A DNA stretch of 63,780 bases, the filler included, from Octopus bimaculoides (taxonomy: Eukaryota), in NCBI RefSeq assembly GCF_001194135.2. It is 6 parts of 6 records of this genome, joined end to end, with 100 filler letters (N's around TTAATTAATTAA, not from the genome) between each part and the next. Parts side by side here need not be neighbours in the genome. Positions count along the whole stretch, not along the records: positions 37,035 to 60,642 come from NC_068998.1; 5 more parts are not named here. One strand, written 5' to 3'. Positions within the stretch are counted from its first letter, which is position 1; each line of letters opens with the position of its first letter. The translations under genes were made by a program, and so were the position numbers. Below the pieces are notes generated by a model. That model was given only the letters and a program-made list of their open reading frames with translations. It ran no database searches and had not been told where the DNA came from. Positions 36,631-61,065 of this stretch are shown here, piece by piece.

Positions 36631-37298
36631 GATATATAACTTAAACATACACCCCCTCCCCCACATTTTTTAACACATCCCTTCCTTGCTACGTCATCAC
36701 AGAGACGACATAGCATGAAACTTAGAGTGGTGACTGAAGTTTCATCTTTCATTAAACGTGTGTATAAGTATGTGTGTGTGTGTGTGTGTGTATGTAAGTA
36801 TAAGCCCGTGTATGTGATAAGTGAGTGAATATGTATGTGAACAGAATTGTATACATTATTCATGATCTGCTGGTTTTGTACAATTGGCTTTTCTTTTTTA
36901 GACTGCTTCACCGTATGTTATCTTCTGCATATATNNNNNNNNNNNNNNNNNNNNNNNNNNNNNNNNNNNNNNNNNNNNTTAATTAATTAANNNNNNNNNN
37001 NNNNNNNNNNNNNNNNNNNNNNNNNNNNNNNNNNATATATATATATATAAAGGTACATATATGTATATACATGTATACATATGTATATAAATATGTGTGT
37101 GCATATTTGTATGTATGTTTATATCTTTGTATTAGTGTGTGGGTATATTAGTGACAGGAAGAGAGAGATGAAAAAACTCATTCATCACAAATTCATAACA
37201 GCACAAGCGGGCGCACACACGCACTCACACACACGCACTCACACAAAACACACGCATGCATACATATATATCTACATACCTACCTACCTACGTATATA

Positions 37299-38193
37299 TT
37301 AGGTTGTTTCACATGAAATGTCGCATTTTTATGTCATTTAAAAACTCAATTTTGTATATCTTGCATTTAATCTTGACTCTTTCTCTTTCCCAACAATATT
37401 GGTATGCAAAATTCGTAACCACAGACCTTATGAAAATGATATCAACCAAACTATGTTGAGTGATTTTCTCGTATGAGTACAAACTGTGTCACTTTGCCGC
37501 AGAAGCTCTACGGACTATCATAACGGTTTTGTTGACCGCAGAATTGTTCAGAGATGGTTCCTAAGTTCTTGTTCAGGAGATGATAACCTTGAAAATAAAG
37601 TAAGTGATAGGCAAAAATCAGTTATTCGGCATGATGGATTAAATGCTTTGGTTGAACAAAATCCGAGAACAAAGGTTCGAAAACTTTCATCAGAACCCCA
37701 AACATCTCGCACAACTGTTTTGGACACCTGTGAAAAAATTGGAATAGTCAAGAAAACGGATAGGTTTGTTCCACATCAACTGAACGAGATTAAAAAAAAA
37801 ACAGACGCCTCGAAGTCTGCTCCTTATTGCTTTCTCGACTGGAGAAAGACCATTCGAAAAAGAAGCAGCCCAGACTAATGAATAGCGAAGGCCCAATTTA
37901 GCTCCACGACAAAGTTGCAAAGCCTGAATTATGAGATTTTGCAACATCCTCCCTATTTCCCTGATATCTCTCCTACTGATTATCACTTATTGAAGTATTT
38001 TGAACTTTCGTAAGAGATAACTGAAGCATTCGGACTGTTTATCACAGCAAAACATGAATTTTAAAGTGAAACGTTTCGTAAATGTCATAAATGAACATCG
38101 ATCATACTATGATTAAATAAATCAGTTCTCTAACACTTCTGAAACATTTTATTGTTACCTTCTAAATACGACATTTCATGTGAAACAACCTAA
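37299..38193 (+). mobile_element. Mariner transposon, internally deleted (895 bp)
   Basis: Perfect 25-bp TIR TTAGGTTGTTTCACATGAAATGTCG, TA at 37297-98 and 38194-95; HTH-region remnant, FVPHQL and PPYFPDISPTDYHL motifs; central catalytic region missing. Confidence 0.95.
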
Positions 38194-38509: not shown

Positions 38510-38850
38510 AGCATCGTTAGCACGCCGGGCACAATGTTTAGCGATATTCCGTCGCAACGCTCTGAGCTCAATTTCCTCGGAGGTTGGCTTTGCCTCTTAT
38601 CCGTTCTGGGTTGATAAATTAAGTAACAGTCAAACACCGCGGTCGATGTGATCGTATTTAAATCTAAAGATATATTTTCTAAAGGCGGCGAAAATGCAAG
38701 ATCGTTGAAATGTCAGACAGGATGCTTTGCTGTGTACATTTCGTCCTTCCGACCTGTGAGTTCAAATTCCTTTGATGCTTACATTGCATTTCGTCCTTAC
38801 ATGATGTGTTACTAATGCACCAGTCAAGTATTTTAGTCGATTAGTTTATT
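38510..38850 (+). mobile_element. Two tandem SINE family A copies (second degenerate)
   Basis: tcgttagcacgccgggcacaatg... at 38515 and aaggcggcgaaaatgcaagatcg at 38683. Confidence 0.7.
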
Positions 38851-40267
38851 CTTTATTTATTTATTCTCTCAGAAACGTCTCTCTCTTTCGTCGCTAGATG
38901 GATTATTGTGAGACAACTCACAACCTTAATTTCTCCAGGAATGCAGAAAAGTTAAGCAAGAGGTCAGCTTTACAGGCCGCTAGGCAAAAGATACACTGGA
39001 GCCTTTACACGCACGCCAATGTGTACATAGCTTATCCTTGGTCCTATAGAAACTCACGGCCACTGGACACTCAAGGGCGCTGGACACTCGGTACCCCCCA
39101 AACACCACCACTACCACCAGGCAACTGCTCTCTATGCACATACCTGAAGTCGGCACTGCTAGTAAAATCTTATCATGAAAACTGCTGTATAACTAAAATC
39201 ATTGATAGGTGGGGTAATAAACAGTTGTTAGTTGTACAGATGTTAGTAAATTGTGCATTAATTTACTCGACTAAATTCTAGTTCAATTATAACGTTTTCT
39301 TATAATAAATGTCAGAATTTACGACAAAATACAACTGCTATTGACAATAAACCGTAATGATGATTCCTGACATTCATAATATATATTTAAAGATAACATT
39401 TCATCAACATTGTAACATTTCTAGAAGGATATTGATAATAAAGGAAACGGAAAATTTCAATAACCTAAACTTTTTATCACTTGAATTCATCGTCTGGATT
39501 TAGCGAACGGAAGAATATTCAGAGTAGAAGATACGGTCGTTAGTGGGAAAAAAGCCCCAATATTGAATTTCTAATGTATTTTACAACTGGTTTGAGATCT
39601 GACATTTACAAACCAACAATGAATATTAGTGAATACTTTTGATAAATTGTTCTTTCGTACTTCCTTCTGGTTGAAGTGAATGATCTTGTGTCAAATAATA
39701 AACAGAATAAAACCTGCAATGAATTTGTGGCAAAATACATCGGATGATATTTCATCCGCTAATCTGGTGTTAGTTCGAAAGTTTGATTTATGATAATTGT
39801 GATTTGAGTTAATTTTACACATTAGTGATTTATATATATTATATTTGGCTCGGTACGAAGATAAAGGCAGTACATTTATCACATTCTTACGTGATATATT
39901 GTTCAATGTGTTTATCTGTTCTAAGTAAATAATGTATCTTGATTTTGTTATGACTCAGTATGAGGTTCAACATTGATCATAATTTTGCAGAGTTAACACC
40001 ACGTATTTAAGGTATAGGCGTCAATTCGTATCATTGTTCATTCGGAAGTATTTAATGTGCTAATCTACATGTACACTGGAATATTTATTGTCAGTGAAGA
40101 TATGTTTAACTTCAAAGACAATCGGAAGGCTTATAGATCAATGTCAAAACAAAATTAGGTGTAGTTAGTTTTCACTACCTGAAACATGATTGTGATCCCA
40201 TTTATGGCATCATCATAGGTAATCTGTGGATAACCAACGCTGGTCGAATGTCTGAAATTCGCGATCC

Positions 40268-40430
40268 GTGTTGGTGTGTTTACGTCCCCGTAAATCAGCG
40301 GTTCAGCAGAAAGAGCCCGACAGGAATAAGCACAAGGCTTTAAAAAACGTAAGTACTCAGGTCGTTTCACTCGACTAAAATTTTTTCAAAGCGGGGCCCC
40401 AGCATGACCACGATCTAACAAGCAAAACGG
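40268..40430 (+). mobile_element. SINE family B, 3' half
   Basis: ggtgtgtttacgtccccgtaaatcagcggttc...gggccccagcatgacc. Confidence 0.75.
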
Positions 40431-41220
40431 AAGGGTGGAAAAGTATACATATATATGTATACATTCATTCATTCACATAAATTCTAACAAGAAAATTGTA
40501 TCTTACAATTTGCTTTTTATGATATTATCATTGGCTACAAGCTTCTATGATTTCAGTCTTTGTTATAAATTTTATTATCGCCAAGAAATGTGCTTTAAAC
40601 ACATACCTTCTATGAATCATAAACATTGAAATTCTTTCCAACATATATTTTTGAATGCTTTGCTTTATTTTTGTTATATTTCATAGCTATAGTGATAATA
40701 CAAGGAGATCGTTCGAATGGAAATTATAGTCTTATATTTTTTTATTCTGTCAGCATTAATGTCTATCATTTTGAGAGTAAATCATTTCTGTTTCCGTGAT
40801 ATAGGAAATCGATTTATGAATTGATTAGACATCTCTGGTTTTATATTTGATTCCATTTAATACAGGGCAAGTGACAGAAACCTACAATACGATTTCTATC
40901 ATTCTTTACGGTCTAAAATTTCGTATAACATCCGAGAATTTCGTGGGGGTGTTTACATGTCTAAATAGAATATTAATTGCATCGATAGCGCCTGACTTGG
41001 AGTGTCTGCGAAGGTCATAGACTATGCCCTTTCCGCCAAACTCAGCAAATTAAAAGAAAAGCATTTGCCTACTGGTCCAAATTAATGACAATCGTTAGAC
41101 ACATTAGTTTCAATTTTTGGCACAATGCCAGAAATTTTAAAGGTGCGTAACTGGTACTTATTTCTATCGACCCCGACAAGATAGGCAAATTCGATCTCGG
41201 TGGAATTTCTACTCAGAACG

Positions 41221-41418
41221 CAAATATGATTCTATGTTTAAGAGATGAGGAATTATGTACATTATTTACATTATTTACATTTGACGGGTATTTGTCCTCA
41301 TCTTGTTTGTTGTTAACACAACGTTTCGGCTGATATACCCTCCAGCCTTCATCAGGTGTCTTGGGGAAATTTCGAACCTGGGTTCTCATTCCTAAGGTAT
41401 TTTTTGATGTTGTTGTTG

Positions 41419-41454
<36 letters not shown>

Positions 41455-41526
41455 TCACTGCCTGGAATCGAACTCAGAATCTTGGGGTTAATAGCCCGCG
41501 CTCTTAACCACTACGCCATATGCCCG
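41221..41526 (-). mobile_element. tRNA-headed SINE-like element carrying a minimal hammerhead ribozyme
   Basis: A box TGGCGTAGTGG (41518-41508), B box GAGTTCGATTCC (41475-41464), (AAT)n, HHR, 3' hairpin AGATGAGGA/TCCTCATCT. Confidence 0.85.
41315..41360 (-). ncRNA. Minimal type I hammerhead ribozyme motif
   Basis: GACAC-CUGAUGA-A-GGCUG/gaggguauau/CAGCC-GAA-ACGU-U^GUGUU; predicted cleavage between 41320 and 41319. Confidence 0.85.
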
Positions 41527-43647
41527 TAAAGACGAACGAAATGCCGCAAAGCATTTTGATCTGTGTGCTAACGCTTCTGTCAGCTCATTGCCTTAAACAT
41601 TAGATACATTGCTTCTATAAACTTAATATTTCTTCTTTCATACATTTTGTAACAATTATTCTTGTTGTTGTTGTTGTAATTATGCCTAATTCCAAAACGG
41701 TCAAGTGAACTTATGATCAAATTGTTGCAGCAGTATTTACATGGTGTGGTAACTCATTATTTCATTATTTGTGTGTGTCTGTGTCCGTGTATGAGTGTGT
41801 GTGTCTGTGTGTATCTGTGTGTGAGTGTGTGAGCGTTTGCGTGTGTGTGCCTGTATGTATATTGTCACGTAGATCATCACAATAAAGTTGTCTCTTCTCT
41901 CTTTGTCTCTTACTCGCCATAAGTCTGGTGCCATATTTAAAGGGCTTTAAATTAATAAGCCTGTTTAAGCATCCCCGAATATGTTTTCAGTATACAGACC
42001 GACAGTCAGACGGGTGGACGGACGGACGGACAGGCAGACAGACAAACAGAAAAATAAATAGAGTGATAGTTTTGAAGACTCAGCTGAGTGACATTTTAGA
42101 GAATCAATTCACAGATTCAAAGATGTCATTCATTCGTCTAGTATCAAATTTAATCTATCGTATTTTACAAGGTGTTTTCCTTTCTCGTATACACAGCGAA
42201 AGAGAAACGTATACAAGGTCTTGTTCCTTAATATCAAGATTATAAAGACAAGGAGCACTCACTCGTAATTCAATTAGAAATAATCCCTTGTGAAACTATC
42301 TCTATCTCGTTGCTCGGCATATTAGTCAGTTCCCCCTCAGTGTCATATACTACTATTTCCAAAGAAGAATGGTATTTATATATTCCCGATGTAGATATAC
42401 TATGTCTGAATATATACAATAGAAAGATATTCATTGCTGGAAAGGTTTTTTGCCAGTAGCATGCTCTGTAGAGATAATCACACTTTAAATCTCAGTTCAT
42501 ACCTCGGGTAATTAAATGATATCTATTTTCCTAAAGATAAAATGACTTTGTTAGGCAATTAAATGTTAAAACTAAAAGAAAAAAATCTGCTTTGATTGTC
42601 CATATGAATTTGATACAAAAATTAGATAAACGAATGGGAATCGTGATTAAATGCCTCGTTAAAAACACTCACGAAAGTACTGAAAACGAAATACTATCAT
42701 AATGTAAATGAAACATTTGCAGGTTAAAGTGGTTAGTAATAAACGATTTTAGTATTTGGTCTGATATGAAGCTGCCAATATTGTAATATAAATGTTGATT
42801 TCTTTGGACGTTCTTAGATGAGATGATTAAGGGAATTGGCTGAAAGCAATTCGCTTAATTCCTCTGCTATACAATTTTTTTCATTTCGCGGATTAACTAA
42901 ATGTCTCGTTCAAGAAGACAGAACTTAAACTAGGATTGATAGTGATGAGGAATGTATTGCATATATATATTTATTCACGTTATTGTCAGGCGACTTCATC
43001 CATAAGCACAAACGCACACATACACACACACACACACTCCCACAAGCAACCAACAAACACCCGCCAACACGCACATTCAGAAATATATATATTTGCATCC
43101 CAACATACGAACATTCGCGCTCATACAAACGTTTGTACGCAAACATAGATGTATGCCTGTGTTTATATATACTCACACGCAACAAATATATATACATATG
43201 TGTGTGTATGTATATATGTGTATATATGTATATATAGTAGAAGCAGCTCAGTTACCGGAATAAAACTTTAAGAGAGAAAGAAGTAGTCTATACATATAGA
43301 ATTGAACATATGCGTATGTATTTGTGCATCATGGATACAGTTATGAATGCATATAGAACGTGATGCTATCGCGTTTGTATTAAGCTATATGTGTGTGTAT
43401 GTGAGTACTCGTTAATGCGTGCCTTCATGTGTTGTGTGTGTTTTGTATATCTTTTTTTTTATTAAAATTTGGAAAGCGATAAATAAGATTTCAATACATT
43501 AAAATTTACATTTAAATGAATGTTAACGAACCACTCAAAAACCCGAGTTTAGCGCGACGTGTCCATTTTGTCGACCTATGACGGATAACAAACATAGTTA
43601 ACTTCAGCGAGATTGAATCTCTGCATGTGAATGCAGCATCAATTATT

Positions 43648-43872
43648 GGTTTCAAATTTTGGCACAATGCCAGCGAGTTCAGTGGTGGTGATAGTGGTAG
43701 GGTTTAAGTCAATTACATGGACACTATTGCTGAAGTGGTGCTTATTTTATCGCTCACGAACGGTGAAAGGTAAAATCAGCCTCGGCGAAGTTTGAACTCA
43801 GAATGTAAAAACAGACGAAATGCCGCTAAGCATTTGGTCCTCCAGGCAAACGATTCTGCCCGCTTACCACCT
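43648..43872 (-). mobile_element. SINE family A
   Basis: Reverse complement of family A. Confidence 0.8.
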
Positions 43873-43898
43873 TATTGCCCATTAATATCAAGTCCTAT

Positions 43899-44108
43899 TT
43901 AAGGTGGTAAGTCATCAGGATCGTTAGCACAACGGCTAAAATCTTAGCTGTATTTCCTGCGTCTTCACGTTCTGAGTCGTTATGCCACAGTCGTTATGTC
44001 TGTCATCCTTTCAGAGTCGATAAAATAAGTTTCAGATGAGGGCTGGGGTCGGCGTAATCGACTAGCTCCTCCTTCGAAATTGCTTGCCTTGTGTCAAAAT
44101 TGGAAACC
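43899..44108 (+). mobile_element. SINE family A
   Basis: taaggtggtaag...catcctttcagagtcgataaaataag...gtcaaaattggaaacc. Confidence 0.75.
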
Positions 44109-44900
44109 AACATTATGTTGGATTTATGTTGAGTTAGACGTTCGTATTCGGTCTACTATTGTTAAATATCTTGCAAATATTTTTGCTTCACCAATATTTC
44201 GTTGTGTGGATTTGAAAATATCTTTAAAACGTAATGTGTAGAACATATTTCGTGCATATAGTGATGCAAGAACAATGTCATTTCTTCATCAAACATTTTT
44301 GATAAGTAAAAAGCACGTGGAGTTAACTCTGTTATAATATAGAAAAAACAAGTTCTGGAACAAAAGGGCGCAACGGTTATGTTAATGATTGAAATTATTA
44401 TGCAACTGAGAAAATTAAAACATTAAATATGACTTTTACTATTTTTAATATTCGAGGAGAAGCTTTGTTTCATTTTAGCACTTTAAATGTTTCGAACTTT
44501 CACCTGTCATCTCTACTGTGTCACGCATATTTAAATTACAGACAGATTACATTCCTAATAGGGAAGCAGTGTTAAGACTGTGTAATTTGAATTTTAAAAT
44601 CGAAGTCCGAACATCTGCGTCTCTATGATTCTAAGATAAAGCTTATGGATTTTATGGATACGAATTCTTTAGGAAAGTTACTTACTGAGTAGAGGTCTTG
44701 CATTTGTATTCATCTGAAGGTTTGTTGCTCTTTTTTTGTATGTATTCAGTAGTCTAATGCATACACACATAGACACACAGAAACTCACACATACACTCTC
44801 CCATAGTAACCTATGTATGTATAATTATATGCACAAATACATGCACTTACATATACATACACGAATATAAAAACCAATATTTAGGCAACAATATATACAT

Positions 44901-44953
<53 letters not shown>

Positions 44954-45703
44954 CATATGCGTACATATATACATACACCGATCAACATACACACTTATTC
45001 ACTTATATATATATATATATATATNNNNNNNNNNNNNNNNNNNNNNNNNNNNNNNNNNNNNNNNNNNNNNNNNNNNNNNNNNNNNNNNNNNNNNNNNNNN
45101 NNNNNNNNNNNNNNNNNNNNNNNNNNNNNNNNNNNNNNNNNNNNNNNNNNNNNNNNNNNNNNNNNNNNNNNNNNNNNNNNNNNNNNNNNNNNNNNNNNNN
45201 NNNNNNNNNNNNNNNNNNNNNNNNNNNNNNNNNNNNNNNNNNNNNNNNNNNNNNNNNNNNNNNNNNNNNNNNNNNNNNNNNNNNNNNNNNNNNNNNNNNN
45301 NNNNNNNNNNNNNNNNNNNNNNNNNNNNNNNNNNNNNNNNNNNNNNNNNNNNNNNNNNNNNNNNNNNNNNNNNNNNNNNNNNNNNNNNNNNNNNNNNNNN
45401 NNNNNNNNNNNNNNNNNNNNNNNNNNNNNNNNNNNNNNNNNNNNNNNNNNNNNNNNNNNNNNNNNNNNNNNNNNNNNNNNNNNNNNNNNNNNNNNNNNNN
45501 NNNNNNNNNNNNNNNNNNNNNNNNNNNNNNNNNNNNNNNNNNNNNNNNNNNNNNNNNNNNNNNNNNNNNNNNNNNNNNNNNNNNNNNNNNNNNNNNNNNN
45601 NNNNNNNNNNNNNNNNNNNNNNNNNNNNNNNNNNNNNNNNNNNNNNNNNNNNNNNNNNNNNNNNNNNNNNNNNNNNNNNNNNNNNNNNNNNNNNNNNNNN
45701 NNN

Positions 45704-45739
<36 letters not shown>

Positions 45740-45999
45740 GTATATATAGCCATGAATAGATGACCGTTGATTGACTGTTTTTATGTGATTAATAATTGAT
45801 TAATGTTTAATTGAATATTATTGGATATGTAGAATGATGAAAATAAGATCAGATCATGAAAACAAATATATGAATCGACCTTTGGGAATCTATTACTGCG
45901 GTGATATGGAAGCGTGTAACCGAATAATATAAGTTGCGAAGATTTAAAGTGACTATGGACAGCAAACAAAATGAACGATTGGAGTTAAACAGTGAAACG

Positions 46000-46215
46000 A
46001 ATATAAAACATTATTTTCTACTCTAGGTACAAGGCCCAAAATTTTAGGTGGAGGGGGCAGTCTATTAGATCAACCCTAGTATCCAACTAGTACTTAATTT
46101 ACCGACCCCGAAAAAGTTGACCACGGCGGAATTTGAACTCAAAATGTAAAGACAAACGAAATACCGCTAAACATTTTGCCCGGCGTGCTAACGATTTTGA
46201 CAGCTTGCCGCCTTA
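46000..46215 (-). mobile_element. SINE family A
   Basis: Reverse complement of family A, small core deletion. Confidence 0.85.
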
Positions 46216-47014
46216 CGAATAATACAATATTAACATGGTATTGCATTGAAAATGTATTCATAGAAATCGGAAAATAATAGAAATTAAATTCAAACGCATA
46301 AAAGAAAATATAACTCTTAAAAGCGTGGGAGTAAAAGTGTAGAGTAGTAGTGTTAAATAATTTTTAAAAACATAAACAAATTGTGATGATACTAATACCG
46401 GTAATCATAATAACAATAGTAATAATAAAAATGATACCTATATTTTATGAAAAATTTTCAGCTATTTTAAAAAATGGTCTAGTGATGTTAAAAAAACATT
46501 CTATATGATTTCAACAAATGTATTTTTAAAAAAGTCTCCTTAAAAGTTTTTATTGATGACGAGTTATTTTCCAACAAAAGTTTTTAAATATTCTTCAATA
46601 GAATTATCAAGAGATTTTGAAAAAATAATTCAACAAATATATTTTTCATGCGAAATAGCAGGGCCAAAAGAATTTGGGGAGTGAAATTCATAAAGTTAAG
46701 TGTATAAAGAATGGAAGATAATGATTTAATATAAGAAATAATAGCTGGAAGTTGAAAAATAGTGATGGATATGAAAATAGTAACAGTGAAGAAGCTAATA
46801 AATTAATGATGGGGATGCTGAAAATAGGACATATTTTTAGAAAAGTCGGGGACGAAGACGTTAAAGATGCGATTGTTGTATGTTCTATACATATGTGTAT
46901 ACACATAAGTCGGTTAACGCATTTTGGTTTAAGGTAATATCACTGCATAAAAGAAGATACGAGCAGTGATAAAAATAGGATATTAAAGGAAATTGCATGT
47001 TACGAAATTGATAT

Positions 47015-47349: not shown

Positions 47350-47644
47350 ATTTAGAGGATAATTAATCGATTATCTTTTGAAGAATTTGAGAATGCGATT
47401 ATAATTTAGTAATTTTGTTTTCCTAGCACAGGATCGGCTTGTTAAAAGTATTTATAAAAAGATACTAATTCTGATGATGAGTTCCCGTCCGTGATTTCGT
47501 GCAATAAAATGGTTATGTTTTTCTGCGGTGCAGTAGTTTCTGTGAAAATGTTGACGTTGTCCAACGTTTTCTACTTCATCATGCCATGGTTTTCAAAGAA
47601 AAGATGTGCTTGACTAGGTTTGTGCCGGCTCTTATTCTTTTCTA

Positions 47645-48050
47645 CTCTAGCCACAATTTGGAGAGAGGGGGCCAGTCGATTAGTGCGCAACTGGTACCTA
47701 ATTTATTGACCACGAAAGAATGAATAGCAAAGTCGACCTCAGCGGAATTTGAACTTAGAACGTAAACGAAGACAGACGAAATACCGCTAAGCATTTGGCC
47801 CGGCGCACTAACTTTTTTGCCAGCTCGCCGCCTTGTTTTAAACTTTTGGCACAAGGCCATCAATTTCAGGGTCAGGGTAAGTTGATTACATCGACCTCAG
47901 TGAGCAACTGTTACTTATTTTATCGACTTTGAGAAGATAAAAGTCAAAGTTTCCCTCGGCGAAATTTGAACACAGTCCGCGAAGAGGGACGAAATGTCGC
48001 TAAGAATTTTTGCCCGGTGTGCTAACGACTGTGTCAGCTCGCCACCATGT
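47645..48050 (-). mobile_element. Two tandem SINE family A copies
   Basis: Heads end at ~47833 and ~48047. Confidence 0.85.
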
Positions 48051-50044
48051 CGGCTCTTCTTAATGACTTTCTGAGAGAGAAAATGCATTGTTTGAGACTG
48101 GACTTGTATATAGTGACGGTGAATGATTGATCCTCTTCATAAATAAACAAGTAAATATAGAAATTGATATGTATGTGTGCGTATTTGTGTATATAGGTTT
48201 GTCTGTCACTTCATTGCTCTTTTAAACTCATTTTCACTATGGACATCAAATAACTGTATACTGTAAGTGCTTTATTTAGGTGTGAAGGCAAGGAAGTTGC
48301 CCACATTTAAGTAGGTGTTTATAGTAATGTTTAAGTCATAGGCTAATAAGTTTGAATTCGCACTCTACTGATGAGAAAATGGGGAGCAAATTAAGGGTCC
48401 ATTGATAAGCATATAATACTCGCTGCTCTTATTATCTTAGAAAGAGAGGAACAGTCAGTCCATTGAGCGCGTATAGCAGAAACACGACTTGGAGACTTCA
48501 ACCAGCATTCTCATGCTCAAAGCGCAAGAATGACCGTCATAAATCTATCCGGTTATATGCGGTCATTGAAAAGCCAAAACATCAAATATTTTATCGTCAA
48601 ATGGACAGCGTTAGAACACGGATAAATTTAACAGACTTAAGAAGATATTAAACATTTTGCGATCAGGAAGCACATCCAACTTGCTCAACCATCTCGAAAT
48701 CAAGGTTAGAAAAAAAAACATGTATTTACCGACTGAAAGCCTAGCGGAGAGTAAACTCCTCAAAATCCAAAGTATCACGAGAAAACCAGCCTCAAACTTA
48801 CATGCCGTCTATTATTCACATGTTTTGCCAACTCAACTTAAGAGTTATTCAATCTACCATCTTCTTAATATTCATCTATGCTATGAATAGAATTTCTAAT
48901 TTGTATGTATGTGTTCTCAGATATCGTTGGATGTATATCTCATTCGTACCTTCAACAGCTTAGCCCCATCCTTACATAAAATACTACAGACAGTAGTATC
49001 ATTGTTACTTCACTTGCAATATCACTGTTAACAATATTTTTATTTTCATAACCATTCGTATTTTTACAATATTTATCGACTCTTCTCATCAACGTATATC
49101 ACTCAAAATCTACTTTATGTAGTCACTCCTCATACGCATATGCAGTCTCTTTTTCCCATGTCAAATCTTTTTCTTTTTTTTTTTTGCTTGCGGAATTTTT
49201 TTTTTTTTTCACAATAATACTCAAGAGATATTCTTAGACATTTTTTTTAAAGATTAACATAAAGCCATAATGTACACAACTTCTTTACAGACATATTTTT
49301 TAAGGAAATCTTTTCGTAAAATTTCGTATCTAGAATATTTACTTTTGAGAATCACTTGAGAATTTTCTAGAACTTTCGAAGAAATGGGTCAAAATATCAG
49401 TATGATTATGACAAACAGCATCATCATTATTAGCAAAATCATTAATACTATTATACTTTGCTATCCATCATTTCTTTAATTTTCATATTTATTCATCATC
49501 TATTCGCCGCCTTTAGATTTTTACGTTTCTTACTTGCTACCTTCTAGATATCTAGATACACTTTTTCATCAGCATATATTTGTGTGTGTCTCCCTGTGTG
49601 TGTTTTGTACGGGCATGTCTGTTATAGTAAATCAGCGACGAGAAATGATATTCTTCTACTTGTTTCAGTCATTTGACTGCGGCCATGCTGGAGCACCACC
49701 TTAAAGGGCTTTAGTCGAAAAGTCCTTATATATATATATATATATATATATATNNNNNNNNNNNNNNNNNNNNNNNNNNNNNNNNNNNNNNNNNNNNNNN
49801 NNNNNNNNNNNNNNNNNNNNNNNNNNNNNNNNNNNNNNNNNNNNNNNNNNNNNNNNNNNNNNNNNNNNNNNNNNNNNNNNNNNNNNNNNNNNNNNNNNNN
49901 NNNNNNNNNNNNNNNNNNNNNNNNNNNNNNNNNNNNNNNNNNNNNNNNNNNNNNNNNNNNNNNNNNNNNNGTTATTAGAGGAATTTAGATTCATCTTTTG
50001 CTCTGAAAAACTGTTCGAATGCTTCAATTACCACTTTTCTATTT

Positions 50045-51047: not shown

Positions 51048-51170
51048 GAGCGTGGCTATGTGGTAAGTAGCTTCCGGGTTCAGTCCTACGCACTTCGGCA
51101 AGTGTCTTTTATTATAACCTCAGGTCGACCAAAGCCTTGTGAGTGGATTTGGTAGAGGCAAACGTGGTAA

Positions 51171-51202
<32 letters not shown>

Positions 51203-51425
51203 GCACGCGTGCGTGTGTGTGTATGTGTGTTTGTCCTCATTCCACCGCTCGACAACCCGTGCTAATGTATTTACGACCCCCATAAATTAGCGGTTCGGCA
51301 AAAGACCGATAGAATATTACCAGGTCTTAAAAAGGTACTGGGGTCGATTCATTCGATTAAAAGTTCTTCAAGGCGGTGCCCCAGCATGGTCGTATTCCAA
51401 TGACAGAAACAAGTAACAGATAAAC
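51048..51425 (+). mobile_element. SINE family B, full length
   Basis: gagcgtggctatgtggtaag...ggtgccccagcatggtcg. Confidence 0.9.
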
Positions 51426-52157: not shown

Positions 52158-52238
52158 TATCTTCTTCTTCTTCTTCTTCTTCTTCTTCTTCTTCTTCTTC
52201 TTCTTCTTCTTCTTCTTCTTCTTCTTCTCCTTCTTCTC

Positions 52239-52273
<35 letters not shown>

Positions 52274-52349
52274 TATTATTTTTATTTTTATTATTATTAT
52301 TATTGTTGTTGTTGTTGTTGTTGTTGTTATTATTATTATTATTATTGTT
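52158..52349. repeat. Compound (TTC)n-(ATT)n-(GTT)n-(ATT)n microsatellite
   Basis: Direct reading. Confidence 0.95.
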
Positions 52350-52835
52350 TTTTTCTTCTTTATTCAACTTTTCTTCCATTTCTCGCCGAGTGTTTTCCGT
52401 GCACCTAGAGTAGAGAAGCTAATTGTATGCATTCCCAGTTTACACACGCAAATTCACAGGTAAAATATGTATTTAAAAAAATTAATAAATAAATAAATAA
52501 ATTCATGAATGGATGTTATTTTCACAGCGATAATGCTCTTCTCAGTACATGAGTCGTTCCAGTTAACACGACTTTTTGCACTTCCTGTAGGGATGGTAAG
52601 CCTGGTATCATTTTCAAATAGGTCTCAGTAACTTTTTTTATCATTCCTAGAGATCCTACAATCACTGCTACGGTAGTCGCCTTGAGATGCCACATTTTTC
52701 AATTTCTTTTAGCAAGTCTTTATATTTACTGATCTTGTCAAATTCTTTCGCCGCTATATTATGATCGCAAGGAATACTCATATCAATTAATAAACACATT
52801 TTCTTTGATCATTTATAATAATATCCGGTTTACTA
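52350..52835 (-). mobile_element. R4/Dong-clade retrotransposon 3' end, third family (R4-c)
   Basis: IKASKPDIIINDQ/MCLLIDMSIPCDHNIAAKEFDKISKYKDLL/WHLKATTVAVIVGSLG...VQKVVLTGTTHVLRRALSL* (stop 52522-24), two frameshifts, 3' UTR into (AAT)n. Confidence 0.85.
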
Positions 52836-53467
52836 GCTTTTATAGAAAGCCCAGTATACTCATCATGCCTACTCGTCTAATAAGGGTACACTATGCACAT
52901 GCATCACAATCATATGTGCGCGATATGGTGATCTCATATCAAGATAAACAGCGTGTGACCTTGTAGGTGGGGCCCAGTTAGAATTTTCTTCAAGTCGAGT
53001 AGCCCATCCTGCTCAAAACGTCCCTAAATAAGGTTTGTTTAAGGATGATGAACAAAACACCCATGCTTCCAGAGATGAATTGTTCAAACCTCAAAGAATT
53101 CCTCTCAACACATGGCTACGATGCTCCCCTACACCTTCTGCTCGTGATCAGAGATGCAAATATTGTCAGCCAACAATATCAACGAAAATTGTTGAAACTC
53201 TTGCAGACATTCCTCTAGAATAGCTTCAGTCGAATGACAGAAACCAATATAATAATTAAAGTCGGCCCATCCAAAATATTTACGCACAATGTTATTATGA
53301 TACTTATATTCTGTCATTGTTATATTTCGTAAATTAAGCAGTGTAATAACTTGTAATGATTTAATTTGAACGTTAATTGTCATTTTTCGTGATAAGCTGT
53401 TTCTCTCCACGTCCTGATGTCATAATGCAGATGAGGCAAGTTGGATCTCAATAATAAACTGAAAATA

Positions 53468-53680
53468 CGGCAGCGAGCTGGCAGAAACATTAGCACACCG
53501 GGCAAAATGCTTAGTGGTGTTTCGTCGGTTTTTATGCCGAGGTCGACTATGTCTTTCATCCTTTCAGGGTCAATAAATTAAGTACCAGTTGCATACTGAA
53601 GTCGATCTTAATCAACTGCCTCCCCCCCCCCTAAAAAAAAATTCGAGCCTTGTTCCTAGAGCAGAGAAGAATAATGAACT
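53468..53680 (+). mobile_element. SINE family A
   Basis: ggcagcgagctggcagaaacattagcacaccgggc, family A core. Confidence 0.85.
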
Positions 53681-54219: not shown

Positions 54220-55399
54220 CGTGTGTGTATGTATTTTTATTATGGTAGTTTTTACTTTAAGAGTCCCTCCTAGCGTGAGGCATTTATGTATAGTACAGCC
54301 CTTAATATGAATAAATATATTTATAGGGAATATGAGGTTTTTCACGCTAACTACTTGATAAATTCTTATAAAGATTTGATCTTATATTTAAATTATATAT
54401 ATATATATATACACACACACACGGGTGTGTGATTGAGTGTGTGTGTGTGCGTGTGTGTGTGTGTAGGTGTGTGTGTGTAAACTTTATCACATGTACTTCT
54501 AACTTTGACACTGTATTTTATAAGAAAATGCGACAAAACTACGGCCTTGGGGAAATTAACTAATACAAATACGTTACCAGTCATCAATATAGGCGCGTTA
54601 TTTTCACAACGATTTTCTCAATAATTTAAGTTGATTTACACCTTTCCAACAACAAAAATCGTTTGAAGATATCTTGAAATAGCAATTTTAGTTTTCTAGA
54701 ACCACATCTTTTGCATTAATTTTCTAGTTTCTCTTCCAATCAATATCAATGATTTTCATACACAAGATTATTTTTATAAATACATCTATTACATAGAAAT
54801 ATTTTTACGCTGGGGGATTAAAAAAATTACATTATTATTTTATTATATTCATTTACTCCCAACTGTTTCAAAATTCTATTTCCCAGAGGTATATAAAATA
54901 TTTTCCAAACACAAACACACACAGATTATATATATATATATACANNNNNNNNNNNNNNNNNNNNNNNNNNNNNNNNNNNNNNNNNNNNNNNNNNNNNNNN
55001 NNNNNNNNNNNNNNNNNNNNNNNNNNNNNNNNNNNNNNNNNNNNNNNNNNNNNNNNNNNNNNNNNNNNNNNNNNNNNNNNNNNNNNNNNNNNNNNNNNNN
55101 NNNNNNNNNNNNNNNNNNNNNNNNNNNNNNNNNNNNNNNNNNNNNNNNNNNNNNNNNNNNNNNNNNNNNNNNNNNNNNNNNNNNNNNNNNNNNNNNNNNN
55201 NNNNNNNNNNNNNNNNNNNNNNNNNNNNNNNNNNNNNNNNNNNNNNNNNNNNNNNNNNNNNNNNNNNNNNNNNNNNNNNNNNNNNTATATACACATGCAC
55301 TCACATATATATATATACAAACACATACACTACACACACACATATATATACATACACACATATTTGTATATATTTATATATATATATATACATCATGTA

Positions 55400-55800
55400 T
55401 GTGGGCTAAGTAGCTTGTTTCCCAATCACATGATACCTGGTTCATTCTCACTGCGTGGCACCTTGGGTTAGTTTTTTGTTGCTATAGCCTCCGACAAGCC
55501 AAAGCCTTGCGAGGGGATTTGATAGACTTGACGGAAACTGAAAGAAGCCTGCAGTATATTTGTATATGTATTATCTATTTTCTGTGTGCCTTGTGCCTGT
55601 ATTTGTCGTCACCACATCTTGACAACTGGTATTGATGTACTTACGTCCCCGTAACTTGGCGGTTCGGCAAAAGAACCGATAGTATAAGTACCAAGCTTAA
55701 GCAAGGCAAGTTCTGGGGTCAATTTGTTCAACTAAAAACCTTCGAGGCGATGCCCTAGCATGGCCGCACTCAAATGATTGAAACATGAAAGATAAAAGGT
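55400..55800 (+). mobile_element. SINE family B, full length
   Basis: Head, body and tail all recognisable. Confidence 0.85.
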
Positions 55801-56519: not shown

Positions 56520-56586
<67 letters not shown>

Positions 56587-58289
56587 NNNNNNNNNNNNNN
56601 NNNNNNNNNNNNNNNNNNNNNNNNNNNNNNNNNNNNNNNNNNNNNNNNNNNNNNNNNNNNNNNNNNNNNNNNNNNNNNNNNNNNNNNNNNNNNNNNNNNN
56701 NNNNNNNNNNNNNNNNNNNNNNNNNNNNNNNNNNNNNNNNNNNNNNNNNNNNNNNNNNNNNNNNNNNNNNNNNNNNNNNNNNNNNNNNNNNNNNNNNNNN
56801 NNNNNNNNNNNNNNNNNNNNNNNNNNNNNNNNNNNNNNNNNNNNNNNNNNNNNNNNNNNNNNNNNNNNNNNNNNNNNNNNNNNNNNNNNNNNNNNNNNNN
56901 NNNNNNNNNNNNNNNNNNNNNNNNNNNNNNNNNNNNNNNNNNNNNNNNNNNNNNNNNNNNNNNNNNNNNNNNNNNNNNNNNNNNNNNNNNNNNNNNNNNN
57001 NNNNNNNNNNNNNNNNNNNNNNNNNNNNNNNNNNNNNNNNNNNNNNNNNNNNNNNNNNNNNNNNNNNNNNNNNNNNNNNNNNNNNNNNNNNNNNNNNNNN
57101 NNTATGTATGTATATCGAACAAACTACGGAAAAATACCTTCAAAGGGGTGTGTAAAACATCCGATTCACTGGTACGTCAGTTGAATGTCACATGAATAGG
57201 GTTATAATGCAAATTACAAGCAATAAATTAAATAGAGAGATTCAGTCGATAATCCAAAAATTTATTTATATTATAATATAACATAATATACTATGAATAT
57301 AAGGTAATATGACATTAGATAAATCATTAAAAATCAAAAGAGCCTAAAATTTGTTTCAACTTATATACATTATTTGATTTATAAACAATTCATATCCATT
57401 TATATGAATCTTCAGACGGAATTCCGTGTGAAAGGACGGCTGGATTGTAAAAAAAATTAATTCAAATATCTATGTGCGCATTAACTTTTCAACTACATAA
57501 CAATTACATTAAAAAACAAAATTATAACGGACAAAATAATTAAGTAAATAGAATCTACAACTATCGAAATATATTTCTATATATCTCAGATAATATTAAT
57601 CCAAATTCGTTTAGGTCGAAAACAATCTTTGGTTATTATAATAACATACACCAGCAATATATAAGTATATAAATTAAGTATCAGGGTCTTAATCTAGAGC
57701 CTGTAATAAAACGTGTAAAGAAACATAAAAGATAATATGGTATTATATTGGTAACAACTCTTCTTTTTATTTAAACATTAGGGTTGGGTTTAGAGTTATA
57801 AAACAAAGTTGTTTAAAATGACTAACAAAAAATATTCTTTATTTACTTTGTTCCTAATGTATTTAATATATCATAATATTAATTCATCCTTATAATATCT
57901 TATTGTATTTTTATACACACTCAAACTCTTTTGAGTTTTAGCGCTCGCAGTTTCAACAGTTTGTTTCCCCTCATGAGAAAACGGGAAGCACGCTAACTCT
58001 TTAACCCGGAGTAAATTGCAGTTTCCCCTGAAGTGAAACGAAACCTCATTGGTTAAGTCTCGAAATCATATGTTAGGGTCTTATGAAATTATTTTATTCT
58101 GCAAGTTTTTTTCTCGTTGCAGAAAGATGTTGCCGCACCCAGTCATTTGAACATCTCATGTGGTTGGTTATTTTGCATGGTTATTCAAGTTATATATTTA
58201 GCCCTTAATTCTAGCATCTGCAGCTGTTATTTGCACCGAAGACAGTAGGTGGAGAAAGGAAAAACGCCGACACCCTAGGATAAAGACGT

Positions 58290-58848
58290 TCTTCAACCAC
58301 TGAGGTGTTCTTATTTGTTTGGTGAGATATGAAATGTTTAGTCCACATTAAAGTTTTTAGCCCAAAACAAACGATAACAAAGGATTTATTCTGCGAGCAG
58401 CTAGAGCGGCTTAAGGCAGTTCTAGAAGAAAAACGACCATTTTTGGTTTCAAGTCAAAAGGTGTTCTTCCATCAGGATAATGCTCGGCCACATGCCGCGA
58501 GGATGGCATTCTAAAGGTTAAATCAGTTTCAATGGGAAACGATGCCTCACCCACCATATTCGCCAGACATTGCTCCATCTGGTTATTATTTATTCCGCAG
58601 TCTTCAAAATTATTTGGACAGAAAAAATATGAATTCTGTAGACGAGTTCAGAACAGTACTCGAGGAGTATTTTTTGTCACGGACAAGTTAATTTTGGAAG
58701 AGGGGCCTTGCAAGTCTACCAGATAGATGGAAGAGCATTGTAGAAAATTAAGTAGAGTATATTTTAGATCTAAAAATATCTTTGTTTATCTTAATTTTGA
58801 AAAATAAAAGAAGTATAAAAAACCCACATTATTTATGGGATGACCCAA
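58290..58848 (+). mobile_element. Mariner transposon 3' half with right TIR
   Basis: VFFHQDNARPHAA...HPPYSPDIAPSGYYLFRSLQN...GLASLPDRW; ends gggatgacccaa|ta. Confidence 0.9.
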
Positions 58849-58864
58849 TATACTATATATATAG

Positions 58865-59125
58865 GTGCCGGCGTGACTGTGTGATAAGAAACTTACGTCT
58901 TAACCACATGGTTGTGGGTTCAGTCCCACTACGTGGCACCTTGGGAAAGTCTCTTCTGGTATAGCCTCGGGTGGACCAAAGACTTGTGAGTGGATTCGGT
59001 AGATGGAAACTGAATGAAGCCTGTCATATACATACATGCATGTGTATGCGTATGTCTTGCTGTGTTTACGTCAAGTCGGTGCCCCAGCATGGCCGCGATT
59101 AATCAATTGAAATAAGTAAAAGAAA
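58865..59125 (+). mobile_element. SINE family B, internally deleted
   Basis: Head to body, then a jump to ggtgccccagcatggccgc. Confidence 0.8.
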
Positions 59126-61065
59126 AGATAAAGGATACACACACACACACACGCACACATACATACATACACACATACATAGATACATACATACATATAT
59201 ATGTGAACCAAGCTCATGAATATCNNNNNNNNNNNNNNNNNNNNNNNNNNNNNNNNNNNNNNNNNNNNNNNNNNNNNNNNNNNNNNNNNNNNNNNNNNNN
59301 NNNNNNNNNNNNNNNNNNNNNNNNNNNNNNNNNNNNNNNNNNNNNNNNNNNNNNNNNNNNNNNNNNNNNNNNNNNNNNNNNNNNNNNNNNNNNNNNNNNN
59401 NNNNNNNNNNNNNNNNNNNNNNNNNNNNNNNNNNNNNNNNNNNNNNNNNNNNNNNNNNNNNNNNNNNNNNNNNNNNNNNNNNNNNNNNNNNNNNNNNNNN
59501 NNNNNNNNNNNNNNNNNNNNNNNNNNNNNNNNNNNNNNNNNNNNNNNNNNNNNNNNNNNNNNNNNNNNNNNNNNNNNNNNNNNNNNNNNNNNNNNNNNNN
59601 NNNNNNNNNNNNNNNNNNNNNNNNNNNNNNNNNNNNNNNNNNNNNNNNNNNNNNNNNNNNNNNNNNNNNNNNNNNNNNNNNNNNNNNNNNNNNNNNNNNN
59701 NNNNNNNNNNNNNNNNNNNNNNNNNNNNNNNNNNNNNNNNNNNNNNNNNNNNNNNNNNNNNNNNNNNNNNNNNNNNNNNNNNNNNNNNNNNNNNNNNNNN
59801 NNNNNNNNNNNNNNNNNNNNNNNNNNNNNNNNNNNNNNNNNNNNNNNNNNNNNNNNNNNNNNNNNNNNNNNNAAGAAAAGATAAAGGATACACACACACA
59901 CACACGCACACATACATACATACATACATACATAGATACATACATACATATATATGTGAACCAAGCTCATGAATATCAACGTCTTCGACAAGAGACGGAG
60001 ACAACTTTGCTCTCTAATGTAAATCGTTACTATGACCAGAGATATGCATTGGACTTGTAAATAATATGTTCTACATTTACTAATTGAATTTAGCCAGTAG
60101 AAGTATAGGATAGCGCCGACTTTACTTGTATTTCAAATCAACATTAATCGGACGGTCGATTCACGGGTAAGTCCGCATTTCGTTCATAACAATCAACTCT
60201 TAATATCGACATTTTCGTGAAAAATATATGGTTATTGCAACTGTACATGAAGTAAGTTCGCAAATCATGTTTTCTGTGTGATATTTGCTAACAAATGTTT
60301 ATTCTCAAGACACCGATCGTCAATACATCGTCATGAAAATAGGCGTTTTTCTTATAGAGAACGAGTACGCCATTCAACCTGCTACTATTTTAAAAGCATT
60401 ATTTTCAGTTCGATGGAAAAGCCACGCACACACACGCACATACACACACACACACACACACACAAACACATACACACACACACTCACACACAAAATAGAC
60501 TGAGAAGCTGATATTCAAGTCAATTATTAACAAAGTACTCCTTGGAGCAATTACATTGATTGTATTACATTCTAGTTATATAACGTCTGTCTGTGTGATG
60601 AAAATCAACACTGTTCTATATACATAAATATATACATATATANNNNNNNNNNNNNNNNNNNNNNNNNNNNNNNNNNNNNNNNNNNNTTAATTAATTAANN
60701 NNNNNNNNNNNNNNNNNNNNNNNNNNNNNNNNNNNNNNNNNNAAGTACTTGTATCCATATTTTTTCTTCCCATGGTGCATCCAGCGTTTCTTTCCGTTTC
60801 AGTTTTACACTTGAAGACATATGTCATAGCCTCGAGTCATTTATAATTATTTATAATTATTCGTTGAGCACTCTCAGCGAAGATATGCATGCATGCATGC
60901 ATGTGTGTATGCGATAAATGCATGCATGGATGGATGCATGCATGCATGTATGTAGGTATGTCGTTATTAAGTTTTATTTCAAGATTTCATGCCAATAGAG
61001 AAGGAGTAGGTTTCTAACCTAGATCCAAGGCTCCTTCATTGGAATTTCAATATTAACAACAGGAT

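Follow-up and report, generated by a model that had tools for sequence, protein, structure and literature searches.

A 306-bp Octopus bimaculoides repeat with a tRNA-like RNA polymerase III promoter region and a Penelope-type hammerhead motif, and its possible mobilisation by Penelope-like elements

The window analysed here is a 63,780-nucleotide stretch of Octopus bimaculoides DNA (NCBI RefSeq assembly GCF_001194135.2) made up of six parts of six records, joined end to end with 100 filler letters between each part and the next; the present report concerns the 23.6-kb piece at positions 37,035 to 60,642, which comes from NC_068998.1. The piece has a G+C content of 31% and holds many old copies of short interspersed elements (SINEs), and one of these, a copy of an older tRNA-derived family that we call SINE A, is split by a 306-bp element at 41221-41526 whose sense strand is the minus strand. 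The element joins a tRNA-like head to a hammerhead ribozyme motif of the type carried by Penelope-like elements (PLEs), and we favour, with some reserve, the view that it is a SINE copied by the reverse transcriptase (RT) of a PLE. When the stretch 41080-41640 was aligned with four other SINE A copies (43620-43900, 45985-46240, 47810-48075 and 47600-47860), the element stood out as a single uninterrupted gap of 306 columns, and it therefore arrived in one piece. The host SINE A is left with a 5' part, its head, at 41527-41594 and a 3' part at 41103-41220, both on the minus strand, so that element and host have the same orientation. The junctions read ...AGAACG/CAAATATG...ATGCCCG/TAAAGAC (slashes mark the edges of the insertion) against the SINE A consensus CTCAGAACGTAAAGAC, which is interrupted as ...AGAACG / TAAAGAC... 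at a point directly upstream of a B-box-like GAGTTCAAATTCC of the host. The only bases common to both junctions are CG, owing to which the boundaries can be shifted by 2 nt; any duplication of the target thus amounts to at most 0-2 bp, and the target-site duplication (TSD) characteristic of tRNA-derived SINEs (SINE2) is lacking. The discrete insertion into an older SINE, with nothing but a CG microhomology at its ends, that had been described in the initial annotation is borne out by this alignment.

Read from 5' to 3' (41526 to 41221), the element consists of a 76-nt tRNA-like head (41451-41526), a microsatellite spacer (41409-41450), a 48-nt body (41361-41408), the 46-nt hammerhead (41315-41360) and a 94-nt tail, all on the minus strand; copies of it would be expected to start at (C)GGGCATATGG and to end near ...AGAATCATATTTG. 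The spacer, previously given as (AAT)n(AAC)n, is (AAT)9 AAA (AAC)4, with (AAT)9 at 41450-41424 and (AAC)4 at 41420-41409. No further copy of the element and no tandem unit was found in the 23.6-kb piece, and the tail has no similarity elsewhere in it; the other matches are to the microsatellite only, and the sole other place in the piece that matches the element, by way of the spacer, is at 52160-52360. That place is itself a long compound microsatellite, composed of (CTT)n, (ATT)n/(ATC), (GTT)n and (ATT)n. The body shows conservation at the peptide level in the copies designated P0001 and P0003. It also contains a second B-box-like motif, GGTTCGAAATT, at 41378-41368 on the minus strand, 10 nt upstream of the hammerhead.

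The head carries an A box for RNA polymerase III (Pol III), TGGCGTAGTGG at 41508-41518, that agrees with the consensus TRGCNNAGTGG at 11 of 11 positions, and a B box, AGTTCGATTCC at 41464-41474, that agrees with GGTTCGANNCC at 10 of 11, both on the minus strand. The two boxes lie at +8 and +52, 33 nt apart, in the arrangement of a SINE2 internal promoter, and they are the sole canonical pair on either strand of the piece. The Rfam tRNA model places its positions 8-63 on 41518-41462 with D-arm, anticodon arm and T-arm aligned, at a score of 10.7 bits against a threshold of 29, while ARAGORN reported no tRNA in the head at its default settings and, at relaxed thresholds, a nonsensical fold that takes in flanking sequence. 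The head is therefore a tRNA-derived promoter region rather than a tRNA gene, and tRNA descent itself is weakly supported. Its resemblance to tRNA-Asn or tRNA-Ser, proposed earlier with a query, stays uncertain as to isotype, the equivalent of the anticodon loop being CUAUUAA; we take this to resemble the CUGUUAA loop of tRNA-Asn. Since tRNA position 8 is placed at 41518, tRNA +1 falls at 41525, which is the 5' edge of the insertion, and the insertion thus starts at the point expected for the first nucleotide of a tRNA-like gene's Pol III transcript. There is no TTTT run in the 306-nt sense strand, the first one lying 161 nt downstream at 41060; judged from sequence, the boxes together with the lack of such a run should be permissive for Pol III transcription of the unit.

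The minimal type I hammerhead at 41315-41360 on the minus strand reads, 5' to 3', GACAC CUGAUGA A GGCUGG-AGGGUAUA-UCAGCC GAA ACGU U/GUGUU, where the slash marks the predicted cut between 41320 and 41319. Helix I (41360-41356 with 41319-41315) has 5 bp, one of them G-U, and helix II (41347-41342 with 41333-41328) has 5-6 bp, the first pair being G-C; CUGAUGA (41355-41349) is followed by an unpaired A at 41348, and GAA (41327-41325) by the palindromic, loop-less ACGU of stem III (41324-41321) and by U17 at 41320. The catalytic core is present (CUGAUGA ... GAA, A15.1, U16.1 and U17), and helices I and II flank it with the closing pair G10.1-C11.1. Beyond the core, the motif bears three extras of PLE type, namely the unpaired base after CUGAUGA, the G10.1-C11.1 pair and the palindromic loop-less ACGU stem III. 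Minimal hammerheads were reportedly found in the pseudo-long terminal repeats (pLTRs) of PLEs by Lunse et al. in 2017. Cervera and de la Pena (2014; PMC4209133) reported the same three features for metazoan PLE ribozymes, minimal hammerheads that lie in pLTRs, and in their work all three emerged from the data and were not imposed by the search. The octopus motif resembles those ribozymes in its CUGAUGA, in the unpaired nucleotide before helix II, in G10.1-C11.1, in its 5-bp helix I, in the palindromic 15.2-16.2 positions and in having no loop III (PMC4209133); it differs in that a tRNA-like head precedes it and in that the 306-bp unit around it lacks a reading frame for RT or endonuclease (EN), and its association with PLEs is putative.

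From the features in PMC4209133 we built a descriptor that asks for the core boxes, for helices I and II of 4 bp or more each, the latter with G10.1-C11.1 as closing pair, for a palindromic 15.2/16.2 without loop III and for U16.1 and H17, and that allows one unpaired base after A9. It matches the piece once, at 41360-41315, against a chance expectation of 0.0005 per piece (2000 first-order Markov simulations). The core, the 5-bp stem I, stem II, the loop-less stem III and the cut site are thus where the initial annotation had put them. The ACGU pairs with itself and is not closed by a loop, which restricts helix III to pairs of RNA molecules, and the predicted ribozyme would therefore be expected to fold actively only as a dimer, through the ACGU palindrome. 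The helix II hairpin is found in all predicted folds, and in cofolding the minimum-energy dimer differs from a double hammerhead, a result that neither supports nor refutes cleavage as a dimer.

Directly 3' of the cut site lies an AC-rich stretch (41286-41314, minus strand) that includes the 5' arm of a 9-bp hairpin, AGAUGAGGA / UCCUCAUCU (41243-41303, minus strand; arms at 41303-41295 and 41251-41243), which encloses three 9-nt repeats, two of AATGTAAAT and one of AATGTACAT, at 41281-41255. The hairpin, also part of the earlier description, does occur in the predicted fold; in the P0001 copy there is one 9-nt repeat fewer and the 5' arm of the hairpin is shortened. The terminal 22 nt, CTTAAACATAGAATCATATTTG (41221-41242, minus strand), are non-repetitive. 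As had been claimed, neither poly-A nor a terminal simple repeat is found at the 3' end of the element, where a SINE2 would have a tail shared with a long interspersed element (LINE) or made of poly-A or a simple repeat. This 3' end is 99 nt beyond the predicted ribozyme cut. A search for an open reading frame (ORF) for RT or for a GIY-YIG protein in or next to the element yielded none; the ORFs of at least 70 amino acids in the piece that were tested have no RT or EN match in Pfam, six-frame profile scanning of the whole piece not being included. At 41213-41389 on the minus strand, the whole 3' module is one 58-codon open frame, which ends just beyond the insertion and is kept in only 3.5% of shuffles of that stretch. 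This frame may have remained from the coding 5' end of a PLE, since the corresponding region of a PLE from the lizard Anolis is the start of the RT ORF, or it could equally be due to chance.

Further copies were sought through protein space by translating the element. The O. bimaculoides matches numbered two for the sense ORF, one for a five-frame composite covering the 3' module and none for the head as a six-frame composite; the copies so found lie in three O. bimaculoides protein models, and with the window copy four are known. A0A0L8FV75 (51 amino acids) corresponds to the sense frame of 41389-41225 at 82% amino acid identity and with one 9-nt repeat fewer. XP_052825882.1, a model of dystrobrevin-beta isoform X1, begins with MPMGIWHSG, which corresponds to GGCATATGGCATAGTGG of the head, and goes on with EGWRVYQPKCCVNNKQDEDKYPS, which corresponds to 41350-41282. 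The C-terminal part of A0A0L8FR24, a NUP42 model, is an antisense translation of 41310-41495 that runs contiguously through ribozyme, body, spacer and head. The spacer differs in length among copies, and the copy in A0A0L8FR24 is without the VVVV segment encoded by (AAC)4. Because A0A0L8FR24 spans both parts and XP_052825882.1 joins the head to the ribozyme, the linkage of head and hammerhead that had been suspected from one copy is, to judge from these sequences, a property of the family and not a local accident. In XP_052825882.1 the residues before G-I-W (P-M) back-translate as CCN-ATG against TTT-ACG in the window, which suggests, weakly and from one copy, that the similarity to the element starts at the same 5' end, (C/T)GGGCATATGG (that is, (C/T)GGGCAT), with an unrelated flank upstream. 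As to the gene models themselves, the copy in XP_052825882.1 is the predicted first coding exon (sense), with about 160 nt apparently missing between A box and helix II, and the copy in A0A0L8FR24 makes up the C-terminal 55 residues (antisense); the two are either SINE exonisation or an annotation artefact. Scans of viral, metagenome and prokaryotic genome contigs for exact DNA patterns, two patterns in each, gave 0 matches in these collections, which are without cephalopods.

The ribozyme differs among the O. bimaculoides copies at CpG sites: stem II shows CCG changed to CTG, and the ACGU palindrome shows CGT changed to TGT or AGT, while the window copy retains both CpGs and the intact motif. 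The initial annotation had named a core not conserved among copies as evidence against its reading; the CpG-type changes in stems II and III are expected in decaying SINE copies and do not decide the matter. They are ordinary decay of inserted copies and uninformative on the master copy.

On balance, we favour the reading that the element is one copy of a dispersed family of composite, non-autonomous Octopus retroposons, a Pol III SINE that is copied in trans by a PLE RT. Its 3' module of about 190 nt would be a PLE-type minimal hammerhead together with the sequence just downstream, taken from a PLE. The initial annotation had spoken of a Penelope-mobilised SINE; of this, the retroposon with a Pol III head and a PLE-type hammerhead stands, and mobilisation by a PLE is a probable reading of the architecture, that is, of the minimal hammerhead features, of ends without poly-A or TSD, and of the 99 nt that separate the cut from the 3' end. 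Starting from what is established above, namely the layout of the element, its defined ends and the linkage within the family, we infer the following course of events. Pol III would start at the head, in keeping with a 5' end at tRNA +1, would read through the unit, which has no T4 run (as had also been noted before), and would terminate in the flanking DNA. An RT/GIY-YIG protein supplied in trans by a PLE would then bind the ribozyme-proximal module and nick the target, and reverse transcription would begin internally, about 100 nt past the cut, which would set a 3' end without poly-A and with little or no TSD, as seen here. As sequence from either side of the cut site is present in the copy, the RNA that served as template would have been uncleaved. 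The ribozyme was most likely kept as part of a PLE recognition module, or as a signal for protein-assisted processing, and not as the maker of the SINE's ends. The family itself likely arose when a PLE copy lacking its 5' part was inserted into the (AAT)n tail of a simple tRNA SINE, an event that would leave an (AAT)n inside the unit, as is seen here.

This scheme leans on what is known of PLE insertion. The Poseidon element of Anolis carolinensis is the only PLE that has been reconstituted in vitro, and its ribozyme lies at the junction of pLTR and ORF (Frangieh et al. 2024; PMC11167929). Its insertion requires an RNA segment that starts within the ribozyme and covers some 150 nt beyond it. 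Synthesis of cDNA is initiated at an internal site in an AC-rich stem-loop, 85-92 nt downstream of the cut, with no homology between RNA and target; since mutation of the ribozyme leaves insertion unimpaired, the substrate is uncleaved RNA. The ribozyme cleaves only in the presence of the protein, whose nuclease favours ATT-rich DNA (PMC11167929). The octopus element is like Poseidon in having a ribozyme, an AC-rich stem-loop region, a copy end some 90-100 nt past the cut, no poly-A, no target homology and an apparently uncleaved template. It differs in that Poseidon is a vertebrate element, to which it is likened by layout, and in that the Anolis region is the start of an ORF whereas the octopus region is a 58-codon open frame of uncertain meaning. 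That PLE cis-sequences are enough to copy foreign sequence is shown by Adineta vaga, where PLE terminal repeats suffice in cis for trans-mobilising foreign cargo (PMC3846280); there, however, the cargo consists of Pol II genes between two pLTRs, with an 8-bp TSD, whereas the octopus element is a Pol III SINE with one 3' module.

As for SINEs that resemble it, octopus SINEs are said to have been recognised as tRNA-derived by Ohshima and Okada in 1994. Like those and other classical SINE2 elements, the present one has a tRNA-like head with A and B boxes, is shorter than 500 bp, apparently occurs as dispersed copies and is nested in another SINE; unlike them, it has no LINE-type tail, poly-A or terminal simple repeat, makes a duplication of 0-2 bp, has its microsatellite inside the unit, and has a PLE as its presumed partner. 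The Schistosoma Sm-alpha and Sj-alpha elements were reportedly described by Ferbeyre et al. in 1998 and by Laha et al. in 2000. According to two sources, they are a precedent: SINE-like repeats of about 335 bp with a Pol III-type promoter and a type I hammerhead (PMC6765202, PMC8490949). Compared by description, the octopus element shares with Sm-alpha that it is a short non-autonomous repeat with such a promoter and a type I hammerhead. The Sm-alpha ribozyme, however, is canonical and efficient, with a closed helix III, its units are largely tandem or satellite, and its cleavage parts the units from the promoter, whereas the octopus ribozyme is loop-less and of minimal PLE type, in a dispersed single unit that would be copied uncleaved. 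Thus the octopus element has the promoter of an Sm-alpha-like SINE, with a loop-less helix III and in a solitary unit. A Pol III SINE-like repeat with a hammerhead is therefore already known, and what would be new is a SINE that depends on PLEs. In the literature we found no tRNA-headed SINE with a hammerhead in cephalopods and no SINE mobilised by a PLE, Dfam, Repbase and SINEBase being outside that search.

Several observations weigh against mobilisation by a PLE or make the parts of the element less compelling. The Rfam hammerhead families gave no match at gathering or permissive thresholds, and none on an 81-nt stretch at E <= 10; a lack of matches is expected of models that need a closed helix III, which the motif does not have. 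The tRNA resemblance of the head is weak, as its score indicates. The energy of the 9-bp hairpin is unexceptional (z = -0.98), and the z-scores for folding are indecisive throughout (3' module -1.7, hairpin region -1.0, whole unit -2.1). The insertion site, ACG/TAAAG, is only moderately AT-rich, and the comparison of distances, 99 nt against 85-92 nt, rests on one lizard PLE. Finally, only four copies are known, three of them as peptides, and as the core is altered at CpG sites in the copies, their conservation gives no argument for function.

The unit might instead be nothing but PLE debris, that is, a severely 5'-truncated copy or a solo terminal piece of a PLE whose pLTR itself contained the tRNA-like sequence and the microsatellite, rather than a SINE. 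Any PLE insertion, however truncated, ends in pLTR, ribozyme and about 100 nt (PMC11167929), most animal minimal hammerheads are solitary and have been attributed to truncated PLEs (PMC4209133), and promoters like those of small RNA genes are known inside the repeats of non-autonomous elements such as Cassandra and Helenus/Ajax (PMC10886601). We nevertheless consider such a fragment unlikely: the 5' end is at tRNA +1, apparently also in XP_052825882.1 with its different upstream flank (by back-translation), a fixed transcription start fits a shared 5' end better than random truncation does, and no coding remnant of RT or EN adjoins the element. A more conventional possibility is an ordinary tRNA SINE that depends on LINEs, with a tail from a LINE 3' end or of unique sequence, in which the hammerhead was carried along or arose by chance, without any link to PLEs. 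tRNA SINEs are indeed extremely abundant in Octopus, where the LINEs Dong-R4, CR1, RTE and L1-Tx1 were recently active (PMC13282606), the ribozyme is decayed in other copies, and 0.0005 matches per 21 kb extrapolate to some tens of chance descriptor matches in a 2.7-Gb genome. Yet the motif bears PLE-specific extras beyond the CUGANGA...GAAA boxes, the spacing from cut to 3' end fits the layout of PLEs, the tail has no resemblance in the piece, and the ends lack poly-A, a terminal microsatellite and a TSD of the usual length; an element of the LINE-dependent kind therefore seems improbable to us.

Two further readings have less room. Retrozymes of the non-LTR (long terminal repeat) type yield tandem transcripts that are cut to monomers and circularised by tRNA ligase, the circles being the transposition intermediates, and a Pol III retrozyme had been offered in the initial annotation as an alternative. 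Animal non-LTR retrozymes are small, AT-rich, non-coding and ribozyme-bearing and are thought to depend on PLEs (PMC7229834; bioRxiv 10.64898/2026.07.22.740005); at 306 nt and low G+C the element fits their range of 170-400 nt (PMC7229834), and retrozymes have been argued to be non-autonomous PLE derivatives (bioRxiv 10.64898/2026.07.22.740005). But those described are tandem and circularising, mostly with canonical type I ribozymes and without a tRNA-like head, whereas the octopus locus holds one copy with one ribozyme and no tandem repeat; a single ribozyme cannot excise the unit, and neither end of the insertion is at the cut site, one being at tRNA +1 and the other 99 nt beyond the cut. 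We regard a retrozyme as very unlikely. The head with (AAT)n(AAC)n does, on its own, resemble a complete simple SINE with a microsatellite tail, and it could be imagined that two insertions, one of a short tRNA SINE with an (AAT)n end and one of an unrelated ribozyme fragment, came to lie side by side by chance. This is close to refuted, for A0A0L8FR24, which represents another genomic copy from a different assembly, repeats the junction of body, spacer and head, head and ribozyme are also joined in a third model, and the 306 bp form one gap against the host SINE.

By definition, SINEs depend on the machinery of LINEs. Should the PLE-copied SINE that we prefer be real, a family of PLE-dependent SINEs would constitute a third kind of host-parasite pair among retroelements, and it is possible, though we put this forward tentatively, that the element is the first recognised SINE class to parasitise PLEs instead of LINEs, with a Pol III head driving a portable PLE module. 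Part of the very numerous solitary minimal hammerheads of invertebrate genomes, so far deemed truncated PLEs, would then be such SINEs. The module of about 190 nt would define the minimal cis-signal needed by a PLE RT, and the element would be a natural minimal template for the recognition of PLE RNA and for internal initiation, a mechanism seen so far in one in-vitro system. It also bears on the role of PLE hammerheads, as the ribozyme is retained in a unit that appears to be copied uncleaved. In Octopus vulgaris, 30 Penelope families have been active recently, which adds to the plausibility of a PLE partner, and about 900 SINE families are unclassified, in an account that does not mention ribozymes (PMC13282606); the present element would help to classify part of the latter. 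For annotation it matters that two O. bimaculoides gene models appear to take copies as coding exons.

The surroundings are rich in repeats. SINE A, which in its sense direction reads AAGGCGGCGAGCTG...GAGTTCAAATTCCGCCGAGGTCGAC..., has at least 8 copies within 16 kb, at 67-78% pairwise identity. Those in the direction of the host are at 41103-41594 (the split copy), 43645-43876, 46010-46215, 47681-47839 and 47832-48048, the last two of which abut at 47681-48048; inverted copies lie at 43921-44110, 53462-53672 and 38514-38653. A second SINE-like family (...GGTTCAGTCCCACTGCGTGGCACCTTGGG...) has four copies of 70-78% identity, at 40266-40406, 51076-51424, 55376-55800 and 58848-59127. A mariner-like remnant at 37486-37986 was considered and not confirmed, Pfam giving no significant match on the neighbouring ORFs. 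Runs of N, 2401 in total length, fall nearly all within (TA)n, (CA)n and (GA)n microsatellites, at about 45020-45700, 49730-49970, 54930-55290, 56540-57100 and 59230-59870. The flanks of the last gap are duplicated at 99% identity (59120-59224 = 59873-59977), and N runs in microsatellites with duplicated flanks are the pattern typical of draft short-read scaffolds.

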